Shown: positions 4,883 to 64,000, counted from the stretch's first letter. The stretch: 64,000 nt of DNA from Malacoraja senta (GCA_038087875.1 CM075980.1:22134001-22198000); one strand, 5' to 3'. Numbers and translations are program-made. The notes: a model not told the origin generated them from the letters alone.

Positions 4883-7805
4883 GTTGCAATCAGTATAGTT
4901 CTATCAATGAATAAATGAACAATTCAACAGCTTTAACTGTTAGTTGAGGGTTAACTACGTAGTATAAATTTAGGGCAATTCCAAGGAACATTAGTTTCAA
5001 GAGTGCAGCATTCCTTCAGACCGTGTCACCTTAGATAAGGTGCTCAAATGCTTGGGTCAACAGTGATAGTTCAAATGCCAAGGCTATTTGCCAAGTCCAA
5101 CACTATTGGACAGGGTCATAAATAGATTTTTATCCTGCGCATAACATGTTCAAAGTTTAAATATGAGGAAGATGTCCTCACTGTATAAAGAGCTCAACCT
5201 ACCTCACCCACCTCTCAAATACAGATAGTCTCACCGTGTAAAGAGATGCTCAAAGTGAACTTTATCTGAAATTCATTTTACTTGTCTCTTCAGTTTTACA
5301 AGTAAACTTGAAATACAATCAGATATTGAACAAGGTCACAGAGGGGTATTGCATTGAATTGTTTTACTTAGATGCTAATTAGTTGGCTTTAAAATTTACA
5401 TGGACTACATAAACAATGTAAAACTGCATGGTCTATGAACAGCCACTATAATTCACGATCACCTCTTGGGTGGTGTTTAGACCCTCAACATTGATTAATT
5501 AACTATTTAAAAGACAATGAATAAAGTATAACATTGAAGTATGTATTTTCTGTATATATGTTTACTGCTTTCCCCGTTTATTTAAAATGACAAGTTTCTC
5601 TAGATTGGCCATTTTAAATTAACTGCCCAAGTAGTTTCAATGTGGCAATTTACTAAATTTCTTGCAGTTGATTAACTAGTCTGTTAGTACACTTTGGCGT
5701 ATGTCTACACATTAGTAAGTCTCATTCCAGATATTTTCGCATAAAATTCTTGGCTGTTATTTCAGTGTGTGGCAGTAGGAGTGCCGCACAGTTAGAGGAG
5801 CTGTTTTTTAGGCCTGGTCGGTTCTCTGCAATGGATTTAAATCATCCAGTGGTACCATTTTGTCCAACAGCAAGAGAAATATCCCCAGTCATCTGGCTAG
5901 TATTCTTTAGTAAACAATATTACTACAATCGATTATCTGGTTCTCATATTGCTGATTGTGGGGACCTGCTGTGTGCCAATTACCAATTATGTCACTTATA
6001 TTACAACAGTAACTACACTCAAAGTACTTCATGGTGTATCAAGTGTCTGAGTCAACACAAGGATATGAAAAGTGCTATAGAGCATTAATGGCTTTAAAAA
6101 AAATCAGCATTGTGCAAAAAGCAGCCAATACAAATGTACAGTAAACAGGAATTGAGCACCCATTCAACATAGATTAACTTAATTGATAAACAGGCCATAA
6201 TCTAAAGATTTCACAGCATTCAATAATGCTTAGATCATCCTGAATGATACCTATTCAATGTGTGGGTTTTTTCAATTCACACTTCTGCCTGTTATCTGTC
6301 TGGATTCATGTAAAAGAATGATCTTAGCAATTTTGTAAAAAGATAGAAATCCAGAACACACAAATATGAAGAAAATGGCAAGCAATAACAAACCATTTGC
6401 TGCTTGTCAGAAGCATCGCCAGCATCAAGGAGGGAAACAAAATGGAAAAACAATTAGCATGGTGCAGCACTATTTAACACTATTCAACCAGCTAAAAGTC
6501 AATGTGAAAATTACAGGAATTTTCAGGAAAAGCATACTCAGAATTATAATCAATGGTTTTCAGTGCATTGGTCTTGAAGAAAATAAAGATAACTAGTTTC
6601 ATAAACTTAACCAAGTTATAAATTTCATTGAAATAATAAGTCTGGAAGTGTAAGCAAATATGTTACTGAATTTTGAGCATGAACCATAATGTTGGATTAT
6701 TGGGAAATTATTTTAGTGCTCCATTACTTGGTCAACTATCATGCTGCAAACCATTTTATAGAGGAAGCCACTTGCTGCCTTTCATGCAGTCTCTGGTTTC
6801 ATTTACAGACATCTATTGCTTGCCCTTCAGTGATCAGAAAACCTTCCACAGCACCCGAAAGGAAAAATAACTAATGCCATAGTAAACTATTCTCACATTG
6901 GGAAAAATCTAGGGGGAAAAGCCATATCTGATATGTTACTAATTCTTTCACAAAAGATTGAAATAAATTAGTCCATTTCATCTGCAAATTGAAGATTACA
7001 ATTGATTCTCAGTCAAAATCTGCAGATGTTTCTACGCTTCATGGGAATTAATTCTAATGCAAAGAATATTGTAATTCTTAGAAAGTAAACCAGTTTTGTC
7101 ATAAACTGCAATAAGGTGAAAACTGATTCAATCATTTGTCGAAAGATTAAAAAATATATAGAAATAGCACATTCACAAATGGTTTAGAAAAAAAATGAAG
7201 AATTAAAGTAATCAAATCCATATTATTCAACATTTCAAAGAAACTGGTCTCAGTCTCTTGAACCCACATGATTCACTAGTGATTCACTAAGGAAATCTAC
7301 TGTCCTTAATCTGGGTTACTTGCCAATCCAACCTTACCATTGTGGTTTGTCTTAACTAGTTTAGATGTCAAATATCATTACAACTTTCCCCAAAGAGTTT
7401 TATTAGAAGTGATGCCAGCAGAAGCAGGGACCAAAGTCACCTGTTTTTACTGGTGTAGTGAGTTCAGCAACCTTTTGTTCCATCTCTTTTGTCATTCTCG
7501 TCAATGGTGCCAAGGGTCAGAATGGTCTGTGACCTTTCTGCTAATCTTCACCAGTGGAAGATGATGTCTGGAGGCAAATGGCCATCAAGAAATGACAAAG
7601 TAAATGGTAATTAAACAAAAATTGAAACACAAAATCAAATCACAGGCAGACTGTCAATTTTGTGTTACTTAAATCAAGATGTTCAATGTACACACATTTG
7701 GCTTAACTTTACGATCACAGCTTGAATACATCATTCCTTTTGCTTCAATCTTTTTTTTAAATCAACTCAATTCATGTTGAGAAATTAATAAAAAGATAGA
7801 CTTAC

Positions 7806-7858
7806 CTGGCTCTCAGCAGAATCATTTTCTTCCCTTTGCTCTTCGATAACGTGTTCAC
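7806..7858 (-). CDS. CLIP1: CLIP1 exon (53 nt)
   Basis: (G)EHVIEEQREENDSAESQ. AG acceptor, CAG|gtaag donor; phase 1 to 0 links both neighbouring exons. Confidence 0.88.
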
Positions 7859-9133
7859 CTTTAAATAAAAAGTGAAAGCTTAAAAATGACATGCAAATCC
7901 ACAAAGTGTTCACATTTTTACGAACTACTGAGTCGGATTGCCTACATCAAAACATTGGGAGCAATTGCCGTAAATGCCGTTATTGACATCACTTGATTTG
8001 GCGTGCAAATCATTGACCATTTTCTTTAAAATTGCATGTCCTCTCTGTAGCTCTGCAGGCGACTTTAGAACTGAAGAACCTAACCACGGAAGTCAATCAC
8101 CCTCAGGTCCATGTTCTGCCTTTGCTAGTTCTCAGCCCCTGTTAGTACATATGTATGAGGATGCCTGGTCTGGAGTAATACATTCAAATAGGTTTCAGCC
8201 TGTGTTCTGTAGCACTATTCTTGCACACAAGCCAAAAAATTCAAGCGTGAAATCACACAATCTAGGCTAACATTGTGTGCAGTAGAGTGTGTGGTGCCTT
8301 TCAGGTGAAATATTACTTTAAATCCTGACACCTTTGCAAATGGATGCAAAGATCCCATGGCAACCTTCGAAAGACAGAAGAAATCTTAAGTGCCCAAGCC
8401 AACACCATGAAAACAAACTTAGCAGATTATGCCACTGTTTCAGGAGTAATTTTAACGCTTTCCAACAAAACAGCAAGAGATTCCTGATGCTGGAAATCTC
8501 AATTAAAAACAGAAAATGCTGTAAATACCCCCATAAAATCAGGCAGCATCTTCAAACAGAGAAGCATAGTTCAGGGCAATGATAACAGAGATAATTTAAA
8601 AGGCATTTTATTAACCAAGACTGGGACATTGCGAGGTCAAGCAGGCACCATTTACTATAAAGGCAGGTAAATCCATCTTTTCTTTATTTTCTGAAAAACT
8701 GTTCGAGGCGTTACCTAGCAGGTTAATTAATTCATTTGTGACCATTGTGTAACACATTTTCCACTTCAATCTCAGACATTTACATGACAGAAGGAATCCA
8801 TTCAACAAATCAAAATCATTCTAGCTGAAGTGGTATCCAGTCAAATTGTACTTCCCAATTCACAACCTGCAGCTTTTTAGGTTATCGTATATCAAATGCA
8901 CTTCCAATTTATAAAACATCTAATGCATGTAATTGCCCCTGGCACCTATTCAGGCAGAGTTGCACACCCTCAGCTTTTTCCTCAACTTCTCTCCAATCTT
9001 TTTGCCAATTACCATAAATCTATGTTCTCAAGTTCTTTATAATTCCATACACCTTGATAAAAAATCTTCCTTTTCCTCCCCTACAAGGGAGAAAGAACTA
9101 GCCAATCTTCCCTAAAAACGAATTCCCCAGCAC

Positions 9134-9795
9134 ATTTTAGGGCACCATAATGTTTGGGACACAGCAATGTCATATAAATAAAAGTAGTCATGTTTAGTAC
9201 TTTGTGGCATATTCTTTGCATGCAATAACTGCTTGAAGTCTGCGATTCATGGACATCACCAGTTGCTTCACAAATGCCTCAAAACTCATTGGCCGGCAGT
9301 TCATTCTACAGCAAGACAATGATCCCCAACATACTGCAAAAGCAACAAAGGAGTTTTGCAAAGCTAAAAAATGGTAAATTCTTGAGTGGCCGTCAATCTC
9401 CCGATCTGAACCCAATTGAGCATGACTTTTATATGCTGAAGAGAAAACTGAAGGGGACTAGCCCCCAAAACAAGCATAAGCTAAAGAAGGCTGAAATACA
9501 GGCCTGGCAGAGCATCACCAGAGAAGACACCCAGCAACTGGTGATGTCCATGAATCGCAGACTTCAAGCAGTCATTGCATGCAAATATGCAACAAAATAC
9601 TAAACATGACTACTTTCATTTACATGACATTTCTGTGTCCCAAACATTATGGTGCCCCGAAATAGGGGATTATGTACAAACACTGACAATGTGCACTTTA
9701 ACCACATGTGATTTTTTTCTATTACAAATCTCAAATTGTGGAGTACAGAGGCAAATAAATAAATGTCTTTGTCCCAAACATTATGGAGGGCACTG
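9134..9795 (+). mobile_element. Rearranged partial Tc1 element (3' part plus inverted copy)
   Basis: QQDND...SPDLNPIE...YATKY remnant and right TIR ending cactg|ta. 9134-9267 is an inverted copy of about 9533-9663. Confidence 0.9.
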
Positions 9796-12471: not shown

Positions 12472-12589
12472 CTCATTCTTGAGTTTCTCTAATTCTTTGT
12501 CTTTATTTGTGATCAAGGCACTGGTAGTAGCGATGGATTTCTGTAAAGAATTTTTGTCGTCTTCAAAGTCTTTCTTTAATAAAGATTCT
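12472..12589 (-). CDS. CLIP1: CLIP1 exon (118 nt)
   Basis: (R)[39 protein letters not shown]. Acceptor ctgcag, donor gtacaa, phase 2 to 0. Confidence 0.93.
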
Positions 12590-15558: not shown

Positions 15559-17199
15559 CAGTGTCCTCCATAATGTTTGGGACAAAGACCCATCATTTAT
15601 TTATTTGCCTCTGTACACCACAATTTGAGATTTGTAATAGAAAAAAATCACATGTAGTTAAAGTGCACATTGTCAGATTTTATTAAAGGGTATTTTTGTA
15701 CATTTTGGTTTCACCATGTAGAAGTTACAGCTGTGTTTATACATCGTTCCCCCATTTTGGGGCACCATAATGTTTGGGACACATGGCTTCACGATGTTTG
15801 TAATTGCTCAGGTGTGTTTAAATGCCTCCTTAATTCAGGTATAAGAGAGCTCTCAGCACCTAGTCTTTCCTCCAGTCTTTCCATCACCTTTGGAAAAGTT
15901 TATTGCTGTTTATCAACATGAGGACCAAAGTTGTGCCAATGAAAGTCAAAGAAGCCATTATGAGACTGAGAAACAAGAATAAAACTGTTAATCGAGACAT
16001 CAGCCATACCTTAGGCTTACCAAAATCAACTGTTTGGAACATCATTAAGAAGAGAGCATGGGTGAGCTTACTAATCACAAAGGGACTGGCAGGCCAAGAA
16101 AGACCTCCACAGCTGATGACAGAATTCTCTCCATAATAAAGAAAAATCCCCAAACACCTGTCCAAAAGATTAGAAACACTCTTCAGGAGTCAGGTGGATT
16201 TGTCAATGACCACTGTCCGCAGAAGACTTCATGAACGGAAATACAGAGGCTACACTGCAAGATGTAAACCACTGGTTAGCCGCAAAAATAGGATGGCCAG
16301 GTTACAGTTTGCCAAGAAGTACTCAAAAGAGCAACCACAGTTCTGGAAAAAGGTCTTGTGGACAGATGAGACGAAGAGTAACAGATGACAAGAGCAAAGT
16401 ATGGAGGAGAGAAGGAACTGCCCAAGATCCAAAGCACCTCATCTGTGAAACCCGGTGGTGGGGGTGTTATGGCCTGGGCATGTATGGCTGCTGAAGGCTC
16501 ACTTATCTTCTTTGATGATACAACTGCTGATGGCAGTAGCATAATGAATTCTGAAGTGTATAGACACATCCTATCTGCTCAAGTTCAAACAAATGCCTCA
16601 CAACTCATTGGCCAGCAGTTCATTCTACAGCAAGACAATGATCCCAAACATACTGCTAAAGCAACAAATTAGTTTTTCAAAACTAAAAAATGGTAAATTC
16701 TTGAGCGGCCAAGTCAATCACCCAATCTGAGCATGCCTTTTATATGCTGAAGAGAAAACTGAAGGGGACTAGCCCCCAAAACAAGCATAAGCTAAAGATG
16801 GCTGAAATACAGGCCTGGCAGAGCATCACCAGAGAAGACACCCAGCAACTGGTGATGTCCATGAATCGCAGACTTCAAGCGGTCATTGCATGCAAAGGAT
16901 ATGCACCAAAATACTAAACACGACTACTTTCATTTACATGACATTGCTGTCCCAAACTTTCATTTACATGACATTGCTGTCCCAAACATTATGGTGACCT
17001 GAAATTGAGGGACTATGTATATTCATTGCTGTAATTTCTACATGGTGAAACCAAAATGTATTAAAATGGGTTTATTAAAATCTGACAACGTGCACTTTAA
17101 CCACATTTGATTTTTTTCTATTACAAATCTCAAATTGTGGAGTACAGAGGCTAATAAATAAATGATGGGTCTTTGTCCCAAACATTATGGACGGCACTG
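15559..17199 (+). mobile_element. Full-length but defective Tc1/mariner transposon (DD34E, long IR/DR-type TIRs)
   Basis: ta|CAGTG...CACTG|ta. TIRs of about 220 bp, each with outer and inner ccataatgtttgggaca repeats. Frameshifted transposase at about 15918-16917 with HTH, WTDE, QQDND and end KGYAPKY*. Confidence 0.95.
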
Positions 17200-20089
17200 T
17201 ATATCTTTTTAGATCTTGAATATTTTCTGATCCAACATTGACATTTCATACATGAAAAGGCAGCGTGTTTGAAAGGAAAATTTGACACATTACAACTCAC
17301 TTTTTCTTTTTAAAAATAAAGAACTAAACTGTTTGCTCTATTGAGTTTCCTAATCTAGCCAAATGTCAGGAACAAATATCAAGGAGAAGTTTAATATATC
17401 TAACTACAGAAGATGATTTTAGGGTAAAACATCAAAAGCCAAGTTGGAGGATAATATCTTTTTTGGAGCATCTTAAAGGAAAGTGGAATGGAGAGGTGCA
17501 AGATTTTAGGAGGGACTTCTAGTAGTTGAGGTGTTGACAGCTAAAGATTCGACTAATAATGATGAAAGTAATGCAGTCCAGAGAGGCCAGACATATTAGA
17601 GTGTTATAGGGTTAGAAGAGTTATGGTGAATACCAAGTGGTTAAAATGTTGAGGGATTTAAAAACAAGATTGCCAAGTTGCTCAGCTGAGCCAACAGAGA
17701 TCACCAAATATAGGGACGATGGATGATCTGAAATTTGATGCAGATTTGGGAATGGGTACCAGATATTTTGATGATTCAAGTTTATTAAGGGGAGAACGAG
17801 AAAATGTAATGGTTGTATTCACATGCAACACATGCATCAAGAGCAGATGAACTGAAGTAGGAGACGGGAAAGATTTGTTGTGTCAATCATTTGATACTAT
17901 TGTTTTAAATCACAGACCTTTCAGTCTTTTCTTTTCTGAATTCTAGCTGCCATTCCATGGAAATCACTATTAAGAATCATTGTCAAGAATGGTGCCTTTT
18001 ATGTTAGTTTGCTATAAACATATGCGTTTGGAGAAATATTTTGACTGTACTGTGATGGAATCTTTTATAACGAATATTTGTTTAATTAGCTTGTTTAAAT
18101 ATCAAAGCAGCAATAAAGCAGAACAAAAAAAACAGAACATAAGTGCAACATCAATAATACGGGGATTAGAGCAATTGGCAAATATTAAAATCGTTAAGCA
18201 TGAAGGATTAAATGATCGTGATTATTTAAAAACTAATGTCCATTGGTTTAGAATAATGGTAGATAAAGTGAGAATTAACCTGAGGAACAGAACAGTTTGC
18301 TGTAGCGTATGCTCTTAAATAACAGATGAAAATGTGAACAAGACAGTTTCATCTTCACTCACTTCTTTTCACTGTTCTTGCCCTATAACATTTATAAGCC
18401 CTGAGGCAGCTGATCTATAGCTGAGCATCCACCCCAAAGACTATCTGGAAGAACAACCACCCAGTGTTTATTCAATAGCAACTATGCTTTCAAGTTCTAA
18501 AATTTCAAATTTGTCAGTACTGATATTCACAAAATTAACCATGAGTAAAAATGTTAAAAAGAATTAGTGACAAAGATAAAAATTAACACTTTGGTGCACT
18601 AGAAGATACTCAATAAGAATAACATAGATTTGACTCAATTAATAAAAAATAAATTATCTGAGGATTGCCTCTCTCTCCCACTCCCACTCCTCTAAACTGA
18701 AATGAATGGAGTTAATGAATCCAAACTATGCCTAGCATGTTTAGGATGATTTGGGGGCATTTCAGGAAGTTGGTGCTCTGCTCCTGGACTCTAAGAGGGA
18801 CCCAATGTCAATGCATAATTGGAAAATTACCAAAGGACACTTCTTTGGAAACTCAGGGCCTTTGGGTGCAAACTGGCTAATGTGGAATTTTGCAGGTATA
18901 AAACTACGTGTGTGTTCACACGCACACACACACATGCACGACAACCAAGGTAAAATTAGTGTTCTCATGCTTTTTTTGCTGAATAGCCAAGCAGGTCAAG
19001 GGGCCAAATGGCCTGCAACTGATGCTATTTTTTCTTTATATTTGGAACACTTTGATAATTTTATGTTGTGCACCTTGAATACTAAACAGATGGTTCAAAC
19101 ATATTTGCCCAAGGATTCCTTCAGGAGAGAATGCCAACCAGTCAGGACAGAATGTATGATTTATTTTATTGGTTAGGCATGGTTTGGATTCATTTTATTC
19201 ACACGGGTTCACTGGCATCTATAATTGTTCTCTGAACAGAGCAATGTGTGGGCTAAGAAATTATATTTTAGAGAATAGACAACAGTCAATCATATTGGTG
19301 GTTAAGAAAGAACTACAGATGCTGGTAAAATCGAAGGTCGACACAAAATGCTGGAGGAAACTCAGTGGGTCAGGCAGCATCTATGGAGAGAAGGAATTGC
19401 TGACATTTCGGGTCAAGAATTATATTGGTGGGACTGGAGTCATTTAGCCACAACAGGCAAAGATAGCAAAAACAGTAAAAAAAAAATTATAATGGAAATT
19501 AACAGGCCACATTTCAAAAATGAGCTTTAAATGGAGAAATATTAAGCAGTTGTGATTATTATATTGGTTGCAGAGGTAGTTTACCAAACCTGGTGTCAAA
19601 TAATTAGGAAAGTAGATGGATTCTGTTTTTCGGTTTGTTCTATATTGCCTGGAAGAGGTACACCAAATGAGGCGCATAGCCTCTGGCATTTACATTAGGT
19701 GAAGGAGAAAATGTATTTTCTATTTTAAAAAAACACTAAACGGTCCTTAAGTTATACAGTACAAAGATCAAGGAATGTGCAAAATAAACCCCAAAAATAC
19801 TAGTAATAAATTATTGTTAAAGTATATTGCGATTATGCATAATTTAGACAAGAGCAATTTTCTTTACGATGTAGCTATGTAAACTCGGTTATCCAATTAG
19901 ATGGCTTAAATTGGTAACTGCACAGGAATTCCAAACATTGACAGCATTTAGACTATCTTATGAAATTTCTCCAAAACAAATTTCACAGTGCTTTTTGTTT
20001 TTGTAAATTGTTTCAAAAGGTTCCTTGCATCACCCAGATTCTCCTCTTACTGTTAAAGTAAGAAAAAAGTCTAGTCATGAAGCAAATAC

Positions 20090-20110
20090 CTTAAAGTGTT
20101 ATTGGGCAAG
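20090..20110 (-). CDS. CLIP1: CLIP1 21-nt cassette microexon (KK-SLPNNTL-RES)
   Basis: Minus strand reads ttctaac...ttcttgttatcttgcattttaaag|CTTGCCCAATAACACTTTAAG|gtattt. Symmetric phase 2-2 and open. Resembles an SLPSNTL insert I recall at this junction in mammalian CLIP1 isoforms. Confidence 0.8.
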
Positions 20111-22532
20111 CTTTAAAATGCAAGATAACAAGAAGCACAAGTTAGAAACATGGAAGAAAAAATGCAAATTACAATCCAGGAAGTTACACAATTCCGCATT
20201 AAATGGTTTATTTCGTTAAAAAACTGCTTGAAATAATTCACACAGAAGCAAGACACAGTAAAGGAAGGTTGCAGCCATTGTATGTACAAAAAATTATTAT
20301 GGTTTGATTGGTTTTGGCTACTTATTGTAACGTGGATAGACCTTTTTCAGTCTTACCATCAAAGACAGACAGATTTAGCAAGGACAGCAAAATTAGGAGA
20401 AAGAGAGGAGGGAGATGAGGTTTTGTAAGTTAAGCAGAGAGACAATGACACTTTGCAAGCCACAGTGACTTGTTTGACATTGCGTTAGCACAGAAACAGA
20501 AGTCAATGTTCAATAAAATAGAAATACATTTATCTTTCAAAGATTAACATTAATTTAACAAGGCATATTTTCAATTACAATTCAAAGGATTTTCTTGATG
20601 GTCAGAAATTGCTTCAAAATGTATATATATATATATTTTAAAATGTCTTGAGAGATGCTGTATCATTTTGACAGCAAGCAACAAAAAAGTATATTTGCAT
20701 TTTCTGACAATACCAAGAACGGACACAGACTTTGAGTGTTTTTAGTTAATTTTAAATTGGGTTCTGAAACAATTCAGCATGACTCAGTTCAAAATATAAT
20801 TCTAGGACAAAAAAAGGTTATAGAGAATACTGTCCTGTGTCTTTTTCAAGAACAAAATGTTCAGAAAGAGCATTCAATGGTCATCCAAATTTAGCCAGTT
20901 ACAATTAATCTTAAAAATGGAAAAAGTAAATATTTAAACAGAGCACACACTAAACTATTTTGACCAAGTCTTGCTGTATTATCATAGAACTCAATATATA
21001 ATATTAATCTCGAAGAAAGTCATAACTTCTAAAATAAAATGCATGCTGGATAGAACTATAATAGTCCAATAAAATTGTCCTCACTTTTCTATTAGCAATT
21101 TGCATCTAGTTCAGGTCCAAATGAAGTAACTATTTAATCTGTGCCTTTGTAGATTTTATGAACTTTATCCTACATATCTACAGCCATGTAAACTCATATT
21201 ACTCAACGTGCATTAATAATATTGAGGAGCAACTGTATTCTTTTAATGTTAAGAAAGCTTTGATTTGGATTTAATCTCTAGCAAGATCTGGGTCACAGCA
21301 AAAGAAGATAATTGCTTTGGATTTTTTATTTTAAACAGGTAAAGGATAAATGTTGATTCTATAATCAAATGCAGTGCAAAAGACAGATTTGTGCAATCAA
21401 AAACTGTTTGTTTATCTTATTCGATAAGTGAATTATTTAAAAAGTAAAAGCTTAACTGCAGATTAATTCAAAATTATGTTATTTACTAATAATTTCAATT
21501 CATTAACTGGATAAAATGCTAACATATTCCCAAATCCTACCTAATTTGATGGCTAATAGCATCAACCAAATTGGGGTCTTCAACTTTACAGCATTAAAAT
21601 ATGAATTCTACATAATTTTATGAACATCTGGCAACAACGAATTTAGCTGCAAATGTTTTGGAATGCTTAAGTTAGTTCAGTAGTATTTAACTAAATAACT
21701 TTAAATATTTACTGCTTACTTTTGGAATCAACTATTGAAAACATGAAACTATTACAATGGGAGAGTTCAATTGCAATTTATATATTAAAGCTAATCTCCG
21801 ACGAGGAAAAACAATTACTATTTCACTTTTTTTTTTTAAATGAGGCCAACAACACAAATGCTCTAAAATAACAAGTAAAGAGGTCACATGTTAAATTTAA
21901 AACAGAGTTCAATTATTTCAACAGATTCTATCATCACAAAAATGTTGAAAATATGCTTACCATAAAAATAACATGTTGAGCACTGATCAAGCCCCAATTT
22001 ATATTAAAAATAAATTTCTATCAGGTTTAGTTTTACCAAACTAACCCAACAATGTAGTGGTCAATGAATAAGTCATTTGCCTTCTGCCCCCAAAGCATTA
22101 ATTGAACAAACCCATTCAGTTCCTAGCACTAACAAACCCCTTCAACACAGGACTTTGTACCTTAAGAACAACATTTCCACAAATCATGCTTCATACAACT
22201 CCAATAGACATATCTGACGTCTTCACTCAAGTTAAAAATGCTGAGATTAGCTTATTCTAGTTTAAATTGATAATTTTTACCATTTACAAAATGATCTGAG
22301 ATCATTGAGTAGTAGATAGTATGCACAAAGTGAACAAGTCATCTGTTAATCTTTATGTATTAGGTACTGGGGACATTTTCTTTTAAAGCTAGTTACTTAA
22401 CTGACAGCCTTTCATTCATATTTAACAATACTCCTACACTATTTAGCAGCCAACCTGATTAGCTCATCTGTTTATACAGCCTCCTGATTTTCCAGGAAAA
22501 AAATATTCTGTGACAGAATTTGGAGACCTTAC

Positions 22533-22582
22533 CTCTTTTTCATTTCTAGTAGCTGATTATTAAGTGCAGATCGCTCTTCGAG
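22533..22582 (-). CDS. CLIP1: CLIP1 exon (50 nt)
   Basis: LEERSALNNQLLEMKK(R). Acceptor tttcag, donor gtaagg, phase 0 to 2. Confidence 0.93.
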
Positions 22583-62699: not shown

Positions 62700-64000
62700 C
62701 ATGCCCCCCATAATGTTTGAGACAAAGACCCATCATTTATTTATTTGTACTCCACAATTTGAGATTTGTAATAGAAAAAAAATCACATGTAGTTAAAGTG
62801 CACATGTCAGATTTGATTAAAGGGTGTTTTTATACATTTTGGTTTCACCATGTCGAATTTACAGCTGTGTTTATACATCGTTCCCCCATTTCAGGGCATC
62901 ATAATGTTTGGGACACGTGGCTTCACAGGTGTTTGTAGTTGCTCGGGTGTGTTTAAAAGCCTCCTTAATGCAGGTATAAGAGAGCTCTCAGCACCTAGTC
63001 TTTCCTCCAGTCTTTCCATCACCTTTGGAAACTTTTATTGCTGTTTTTCAACGCGAGCGCCAAAGTTGTGCCAATGAAAGTCAAAGAAGCCATTATGACA
63101 CTGAGAAACAGGAATAAAACTGTTAGAGACATCAATCAAACTTGCTTACCAAAATCAACTGTTTGGAACATCATTAAGAAGAAAGAGAGCACTGGTGAGC
63201 TTACTAATCGCAAAGGGACTGGTAGGCCAAGCAAGACCTCCACAGCTGATGACAGAAGAATTCTCTCTATAATAAAGAAAAATCCCCAAACGCCTGTCCG
63301 ACAGATCAGAAACACTCTTCAGGAGTCAGGTGTGGATTTATCAATGACCACTGTCCGCAGAAGACTTTATGAACAGAAATGCAGAGGCTACACTGCAAGA
63401 TGCAAACCACTGGTTAGCCACAAAAATAGGATGGCCAGGTTACAGTTTGCCATGAAGTACTTAAAAGACCAACCACAGTTCTGGAAAAAGGTCTTGTGGA
63501 CAGATGAGGTAAAGATTAACTTATATCAGAGTGATGGTAAGAGCAAAAAAAAGGAGCAGCGAAGGAACTGCCCAAGATCCAAAGCATACCACCTCATCTG
63601 TGAAACACAGTGGTGGGGGTGTTATGGCCTGGGCATGTATGGCTGCTGAAGGTACTGGCTCACTTATTTTCATTGATGATACAACTGCTGATGGTCGTAG
63701 CATAATGAATTCTGAAGTGTATAGACACATCCTATCTGCTCAAGTTCAAACAAATGCCTCAAAACTCATTGGCCGGCGGTTCATTCTACAGCAAGACAAT
63801 GATCACAAATATACTGCTAATGCAACAAAGGAGTTTTTCAAAGATAAAAAATGGCCAAGCCAATCACCCAATCTGAACCCAATTGAGCATGCCTTCTATA
63901 TGCTGAAGAGAAAACTGAAGGGGACAATCCCCCTAAACAAGCATAAGCTAAAGATGGCTGCAATACAGGCGTGGCAGAGCATCACCAGAGAAGACACACA
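62700..64000 (+). mobile_element. Tc1 transposon, same family as 15559-17199, defective and cut by the window edge
   Basis: Left TIR, HTH/GRP region, WTDE, QQDND and SPNLNPIE, with frameshifts. Confidence 0.93.

Follow-up and report, generated by a model that had tools for sequence, protein, structure and literature searches.

In the CLIP1 (CLIP-170) gene of a cartilaginous fish, the skate Malacoraja senta, a 21-nt segment is with high probability orthologous to a cassette exon of the same length that is conserved and alternatively spliced. Its inclusion would add seven residues (S-hydrophobic-P-S/N-x-T/S-hydrophobic) between a lysine and an arginine, in the final coiled-coil stretch ahead of the zinc knuckles and some 235 residues short of the C-terminal end. 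Judging from structure models, the proline and the polar residues would break the helix locally and leave the heptad register of the flanks preserved. Inclusion would be optional, presumably under the control of the ~60 nt of near-invariant intron on either side of the exon: upstream, a branch point, a U-rich tract containing TCTT and UGC, and a weak AAG acceptor; downstream, the GUAUUU donor and a further conserved block. In the mouse cortex, inclusion of the exon is 25-60% between mid-gestation and the first postnatal week and ~5%, i.e., nearly off, in the adult, and because of this course it behaves as a developmentally timed exon rather than as a stable exon of adult neurons.

The window, i.e., the whole 64,000-nt stretch of M. 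senta DNA analysed here (GCA_038087875.1, CM075980.1:22134001-22198000), contains the 3′ two-thirds of CLIP1, which lies on the minus strand; positions are counted from the first letter of the window. The features that matter for the argument are the following:

44568-42295, minus strand: giant coiled-coil exon of CLIP1
22533-22582, minus strand: upstream constitutive exon (..LEERSALNNQLLEMKK), ending in phase 2 with ..AAA AAG AG at 22533; present in the RNA contigs L004-L006 of a close relative
20111-20175, minus strand: conserved upstream intronic block with TTCTAAC, two TCTT, TGC and the AAG acceptor
20147-20141, minus strand: branch-point-like TTCTAAC, with the branch A at 20142, 32 nt before the microexon
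20122-20120, minus strand: TGC, at -12 to -10 relative to the microexon
20112-20111, minus strand: acceptor AG (AAG), directly before the microexon
20110-20090, minus strand: predicted 21-nt alternative microexon, CTTGCCCAATAACACTTTAAG, an open segment between AG and GT
20089-20084, minus strand: donor GTATTT, directly after the microexon
20028-20089, minus strand: conserved downstream intronic block with the donor GTATTT, TGCTTCA, a CTTAC..GTAAG inverted pair and GAATCTGGGTGAT
12472-12589, minus strand: downstream constitutive exon, starting A GAA TCT and reading ...KLKNE; joined directly to 22533 in L004-L006
6394-6399, minus strand: second CLIP1 microexon, CAAATG (Gln-Met), between exons 7860-7806 and 2061-1931
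ending at base 22, minus strand: zinc-knuckle exon of CLIP1

The exon map was drawn from the three RNA contigs of the close relative (L004-L006), which are 96-99% identical to the window, and runs from 42294 through exons 40652-40510, 37664-37553, 29982-29862, 22582-22533, 12589-12472, 10100-9939, 7860-7806, 2061-1931 and 248-22. The short exon at 7806-7860 (minus strand; ..DEHVIEEQREENDSAESQ in the relative) is missed by scanning for open reading frames and visible only through these contigs. Exon 22533-22582 is one codon shorter in the window (LEERS) than in the relative's transcripts and in tetrapods (LEEERS), which is either a real 3-nt deletion or an assembly slip. The first 63 nt of L004 (a contig of SRR13269312) are intron lying upstream of exon 22582-22533, and the library of SRR13269312 is therefore partly unspliced pre-mRNA. 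Remnants of Tc1/mariner-type transposases are found at 62999-63998 (plus strand), 16705-16914 and 9197-9457, and the open reading frame at 62999-63646 scores 0.95 against HTH_Tnp_Tc3_2 / Sleeping Beauty-like clusters of a protein atlas.

The 21-nt segment lies in a 9.9-kb intron, with exons 22582-22533 and 12589-12472 on either side, behind a U-rich tract that bears two TCTT motifs. It is entered in phase 2, such that the last two bases of the upstream exon and its own first base form a serine codon (AG+C), and it encodes S-L-P-N-N-T-L; its end restores an arginine codon with the first base of exon 12589-12472. The included form is in frame and free of stops (EMKK-SLPNNTL-RES). The original prediction had described a branch-point-like TTCTAAC, a pyrimidine tract, a TGC near the AG, the in-frame 21-nt exon and its donor, and every one of them was found where it had been placed, with exact junctions at 22533, 20110-20090 and 12589. 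Its reading of the segment as an in-frame insert of one proline-containing heptad, SLPNNTL, agrees with our check of the reading frame, and the insert sits in the C-terminal coiled coil.

The intron holds 240 in-frame segments of 3-51 nt bounded by AG and GT, 17 of them 21 nt in length. Candidates that equal the microexon in their pyrimidine content, donor and TGC turn up 0.16-0.6 times per 10 kb, whichever strand of the window is scanned, so that the motif pattern alone is not significant; a scan of 60 kb of intron is expected to yield one or a few. What places the microexon beyond chance is orthology, namely a match of 6/7 residues and 18-20/21 nt to an annotated tetrapod exon, together with conserved intron flanks.

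Comparison with the CLIP1 loci of a dipper, the chicken and the rodent Mastomys (L001, L002, and L003, respectively) revealed an orthologous 21-nt exon between AG and GT in the same intron of each (L001 45292-45312, L002 47169-47189, L003 77884-77904), with the order 22533, microexon, 12589 maintained in all three. The skate exon is identical to these at 18-20 of 21 nt (86-95%), and of its six synonymous third positions, five do not vary among the four species. Identity to the three amniotes amounts to 82-85% over the upstream intron from -60 to -1 and to 34-48% from -120 to -61; the ~60 nt downstream are also conserved, and identity is at background beyond. Within the upstream flank, the branch-point motif, both TCTT, the TGC and the AAG acceptor occupy the same offsets in all four species: UGC is found at -12/-13 and TCTT at about -15 and -23, a CUCUC run is missing, and the zone free of AG upstream of the microexon measures 58-111 nt. 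A UGCU just 3′ of the donor is conserved as well. In a whole-locus blastn search, 20175-20028 was recovered as one block with 83-85% identity to all three amniote loci, above the flanking constitutive exons (74-84%). A comparison with mammalian CLIP1 isoforms was among the checks proposed with the original prediction; the Mastomys exon and its flanks align, and a mouse protein model (XP_006530480.1) carries the insert.

The entire 9.9-kb intron contains only one other alignable block, located at 20319-20468 (minus strand), ~210-360 nt upstream of the microexon, with 75-80% identity to amniotes. It consists of a long C/U-rich tract with several TGC, followed by ATG|GTAAGAC, which resembles a consensus 5′ splice site, and then by GTCTATCCACGTTACAATAA(G/A); the position of its acceptor differs between skate and amniotes. 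A coding role for this block was rejected because of a 1-nt indel that shifts the frame between rodent and birds. Given this indel and the shifted acceptor, the block has the look of a regulatory element, or of a poison or terminal exon, rather than of conserved coding sequence.

At the protein level, searching the giant exon against 1.8 billion representative proteins led to a 2113-residue CLIP1 of the axolotl (Ambystoma isoform X8, P0001), which reads EMKK-SLPSSTL-RESD at the homologous junction. The same exon used in search of close relatives returned only open reading frames at 32-34% identity. When the junction was searched with the axolotl protein as seed, the best 120 of 464 hits, all from tetrapods, included 117 CLIP1 clusters in which the junction could be read. 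A seven-residue insert is found at exactly this junction in 99 of these 117 clusters, and the other 18 have no insert, the skipped form being the one annotated there. Among the matches listed, the insert is most often SLPSNTL (43) or SLPSSTL (41), with SFPSSTL, SLPSNSL, SLPSNTV, SLPSKTI, SLPSITL and SLLSNTL also encountered, and its carriers comprise salamanders, frogs, a gharial (crocodilian), a turtle, a gecko, birds, the platypus, a marsupial and rodents. It is present in the curated chicken protein NP_001383592.1. The skate peptide SLPNNTL fits the pattern S-[LF]-P-S-x-[TS]-[LIV] except for an asparagine instead of a serine at position 4 and is identical to SLPSNTL at six of seven residues. 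Conservation across jawed vertebrates had been anticipated in the original prediction; the exon is indeed common to the skate, amphibians, reptiles, birds, a monotreme, a marsupial and rodents, a distribution in keeping with an exon that arose no later than in the ancestor of jawed vertebrates. From this comparison of sequences, the exon and its flanks probably date to that ancestor or earlier.

In the skate lineage itself, the evidence from RNA is of skipping. Each of the three contigs assembled from RNA of the close relative (SRR13269312, SRR13269336, and SRR13269358) joins 22533 directly to 12589, and for this reason inclusion in the skate is inferred rather than observed; assembled contigs show the major form only. 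A protein search directed at transcript fragments, in which the downstream exon lay within a 148-residue stop-free reference, recovered a genomic open reading frame and fragments of the skipped form only, and none of the included form. The skipping could be taken as a sign that the skate segment is no longer spliced as an exon and survives as a vestige, or as a conserved piece of intron with some other function, in which case its likeness to the tetrapod exon would say nothing about present-day splicing. We consider this very improbable. The segment has retained its AG, its GT, its open frame and six of seven residues, and identity reaches 82-95% at the nucleotide level in exon and flanks, within an intron that is otherwise unalignable but for the block at 20319-20468; an exon out of use is not expected to remain so intact. 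Moreover, contigs reflect the major form only, and the adult mouse cortex also skips this exon at ~95%.

For the mouse, the use of the orthologous exon has been quantified. The table of Weyn-Vanhentenryck et al. (2018) lists a 21-nt Clip1 cassette flagged as known alternative splicing (CA-56430-96499-100937-100958-103653; PMC5989265, Supplementary Data 5), with flanking introns of 4438 and 2695 nt; the corresponding introns of Mastomys measure 4433 and 2695 nt. In the mouse cortex, its percent spliced in (PSI) is 0.25 at E14.5, 0.52 at E16.5, 0.53 at P0, 0.53 at P4 and 0.24 at P7, and later 0.09 at P15, 0.05 at P30, 0.06 at 2 months and 0.07 at 21 months; in a second series, from frontal cortex, it is 0.30 at E11, 0.62 at P5 and ~0.05 from 4 weeks (PMC5989265). 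The study groups the exon with the late switches of module M1, outside the core of that module, and its inclusion declines from P4 to P15 (PMC5989265). The mouse 21-nt exon is thus regulated, but transiently, and is almost off in the mature cortex.

This time course bears on the factors that may control the exon. The original prediction had proposed a neuron-specific microexon, switched on by SRRM3/4 through the UGC just upstream of the acceptor. In the literature, UGC is found between branch point and AG in 74-79% of SRRM3/4 microexons, along with a UCU/CUC-rich enhancer (UCU_CUC..UGC), strong branch-point and pyrimidine signals far from the AG, and a strong 5′ splice site. A length of 21 nt falls within the 3-27 nt range of the SRRM3/4 neural microexon programme, and the UGC at -12/-13, between branch point and AG in all four species, together with the U/C-rich, TCTT-bearing tract upstream, agrees with the sequence criterion of this programme. 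Inclusion in the mouse also doubles from E14.5 to E16.5, when neurons accumulate. The 12-nt microexon of Kdm1a is SRRM4-dependent. A peak similar to that of the CLIP1 exon, at P0-P7, is recorded for this Kdm1a microexon (PMC5989265).

Several observations nonetheless speak against such control by SRRM3/4. PSI in the mouse is already 0.25-0.30 at E11-E14.5, and because cortex values of 0.25-0.62 from E11 to P5 give way to ~0.05 from P30, maintained inclusion in mature neurons does not fit. The donor, AAG|GUAUUU, is devoid of +4A and +5G (that of the chicken is GUACCU) and does not look like the strong 5′ splice site of the class, and no more than 32 nt separate the branch A from the exon. Conservation of the UGC, for its part, is not specific, as this motif belongs to a 60-nt block in which nearly every base is conserved. 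Finally, the 21-nt exon is not among the 314 exons with a delta-PSI of at least 25 upon SRRM4 overexpression in HEK293 cells, where the sole CLIP1 entry is the 6-nt HsaEX0015666 (PMC7935315, S4 Data), an absence that weighs little as the event may be missing from that annotation. All in all, the balance tips somewhat against the proposed neural mechanism through SRRM3/4, and we regard it as rather unlikely.

Another account of the regulation is that the exon is developmentally timed by other factors, e.g., PTBP1/2 acting on TCTT and late-acting proteins such as MBNL, which would turn it on in immature or proliferating cells, and not in neurons only, and off at maturation. We hold this account tentatively, at a little below even odds. 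Late switches depend mainly on Mbnl according to the study that placed the mouse exon among the non-core members of M1 with a drop from P4 to P15 (PMC5989265), and the basal inclusion at E11-E14.5, the two conserved TCTT upstream and the conserved UGCU just after the donor all point in the same direction. Clip1 is also one of ~15 genes whose splicing changed in three types of non-neural cells when PTBP1 was lost. The exon concerned is unnamed there, however, and the PTBP1 and RBFOX2 reports on Clip1 may concern other exons, e.g., the 33-nt HsaEX0015671 or a 105-nt exon. No data set that we examined ties any factor to the 21-nt exon, and GCAUG, the RBFOX motif, was not visible by eye in the aligned conserved blocks.

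The conserved CTTAC..GTAAG inverted pair at 20028-20070 of the window (minus strand) could form a hairpin resembling the duplex of U1 with a 5′ splice site. The invariant CTGGGTGA downstream can pair with TTGCCCA in the 5′ half of the exon. Neither structure has significant support, since RNAalifold recovered a single compensatory pair and folding of one sequence gives a z-score of -1.64. One could imagine a very old RNA switch, in which the 5′ half of the exon and the invariant CUGGGUGA pair around a CUUAC/GUAAG hairpin mimicking the U1-5′ splice site duplex; it would time a brief break of the coiled coil, specific to immature cells, and alter the autoinhibition that results from the fold-back of the zinc knuckles on CAP-Gly during neuronal migration or maturation. 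This scenario is speculative, and we give it only a slim chance.

As to the cassette exon and its product, the consequence of inclusion for the protein was modelled with AlphaFold2 on salamander, not skate, segments of 244 and 237 residues, using alignments of 30 and 18 orthologues and treating a dimeric coiled coil as monomers. The model without the insert is a continuous helix (H2-207), with a pLDDT of 93-97 at the junction, whereas with the insert the helix H98-117 is separated from H121-215 by a gap at L118-P119-S120, where the pLDDT is 79-81. The idea of a hinge put forward in the original prediction thus gains support from these models, as the helix is broken at L-P-S solely when the insert is present, and the insert would interrupt the helix locally. 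Since seven residues make one heptad, the register of the flanking heptads would be kept, and a crude heptad count, which shows one core position common to the two sides of the junction, allows for an unbroken register. We infer that inclusion may affect the fold-back of CLIP-170 or the binding of its partners. An EB-binding SxIP motif was considered in the insert and ruled out, as K-S-L-P has no S/T at the first position.

The 21-nt exon is already known in the sense that it is present in public (RefSeq) gene models and in a published splicing table, and microexons that are conserved and have ultraconserved flanks have been well described as a class, so that no new kind of element is at stake here. 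A literature search found no paper text that pairs CLIP1 or CLIP-170 with a 21-nt microexon, nor the peptide string, and the portions of the MicroExonator supplements that were searched contained no match by gene name or by 21-mer. What the present analysis adds is the extension of an annotated but individually unstudied CLIP1 microexon to a cartilaginous fish. The exon, together with ~120 nt of flanking intron, has stayed almost the same, probably from the ancestor of jawed vertebrates onwards. This constraint, the transient inclusion in the developing mouse cortex and the modelled break of a helix beside the autoinhibitory C-terminus make the exon a reasonable target for work on CLIP-170 isoforms. 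For genome annotation, the value lies in two small CLIP1 exons, of 21 and 6 nt, that standard pipelines may miss.

The second of these exons, CAAATG at 6394-6399, is preceded by ..aagcAG and followed by the donor GTTTGTT, and the 60 nt in front of it hold a C/U tract with three TGC. The Mastomys exon (L003 82654-82659) has the same sequence. The exon is skipped in the relative's RNA contigs, and its two residues stand before IDFLNSV in 89 of 134 CLIP1 proteins of the set collected with that motif. Its human counterpart, HsaEX0015666 (chr12:122276439-122276444; 6 nt), rises from a PSI of 6.8 to 97.5 with SRRM4 in HEK293 cells (PMC7935315, S4 Data). The SRRM4-type microexon of CLIP1 near the zinc knuckles is accordingly this neighbouring 6-nt exon and not the 21-nt exon.

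Among known systems, the closest is the tetrapod 21-nt exon itself (mouse, chicken), for which the included and skipped forms are both annotated. The skate exon shares with it the gene, the intron, the length, the phase, the branch point, TCTT, UGC, the AAG acceptor and the GUAUUU donor, and differs by the asparagine in place of serine at position 4 and by a downstream intron of 7.5 kb vs. 2.5-2.7 kb. HsaEX0015666 resembles the 21-nt exon in being conserved, optional in tetrapod models and located in the C-terminal part of the same gene, with a counterpart in the window; it lies two introns further 3′, has a long C/U tract with three UGC and is listed as responding to SRRM4, whereas the 21-nt exon is not listed. 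The 12-nt exon 8a of Kdm1a (LSD1) is likewise conserved, encodes a short polar insert and shows an inclusion in the cortex that peaks at ~P0-P7 and then declines, but it belongs to another gene and to another protein context. Exon 8a depends on SRRM4/NOVA1. Within CLIP-170, the inserts of CLIP-170(11) and CLIP-170(35)/restin are alternative in-frame cassettes that lengthen the coiled coil, and we take the 33-nt HsaEX0015671 and the 105-nt mouse cassette to encode them. Unlike the 21-nt exon, these add 11 and 35 residues near the N-terminal end of the coiled coil.
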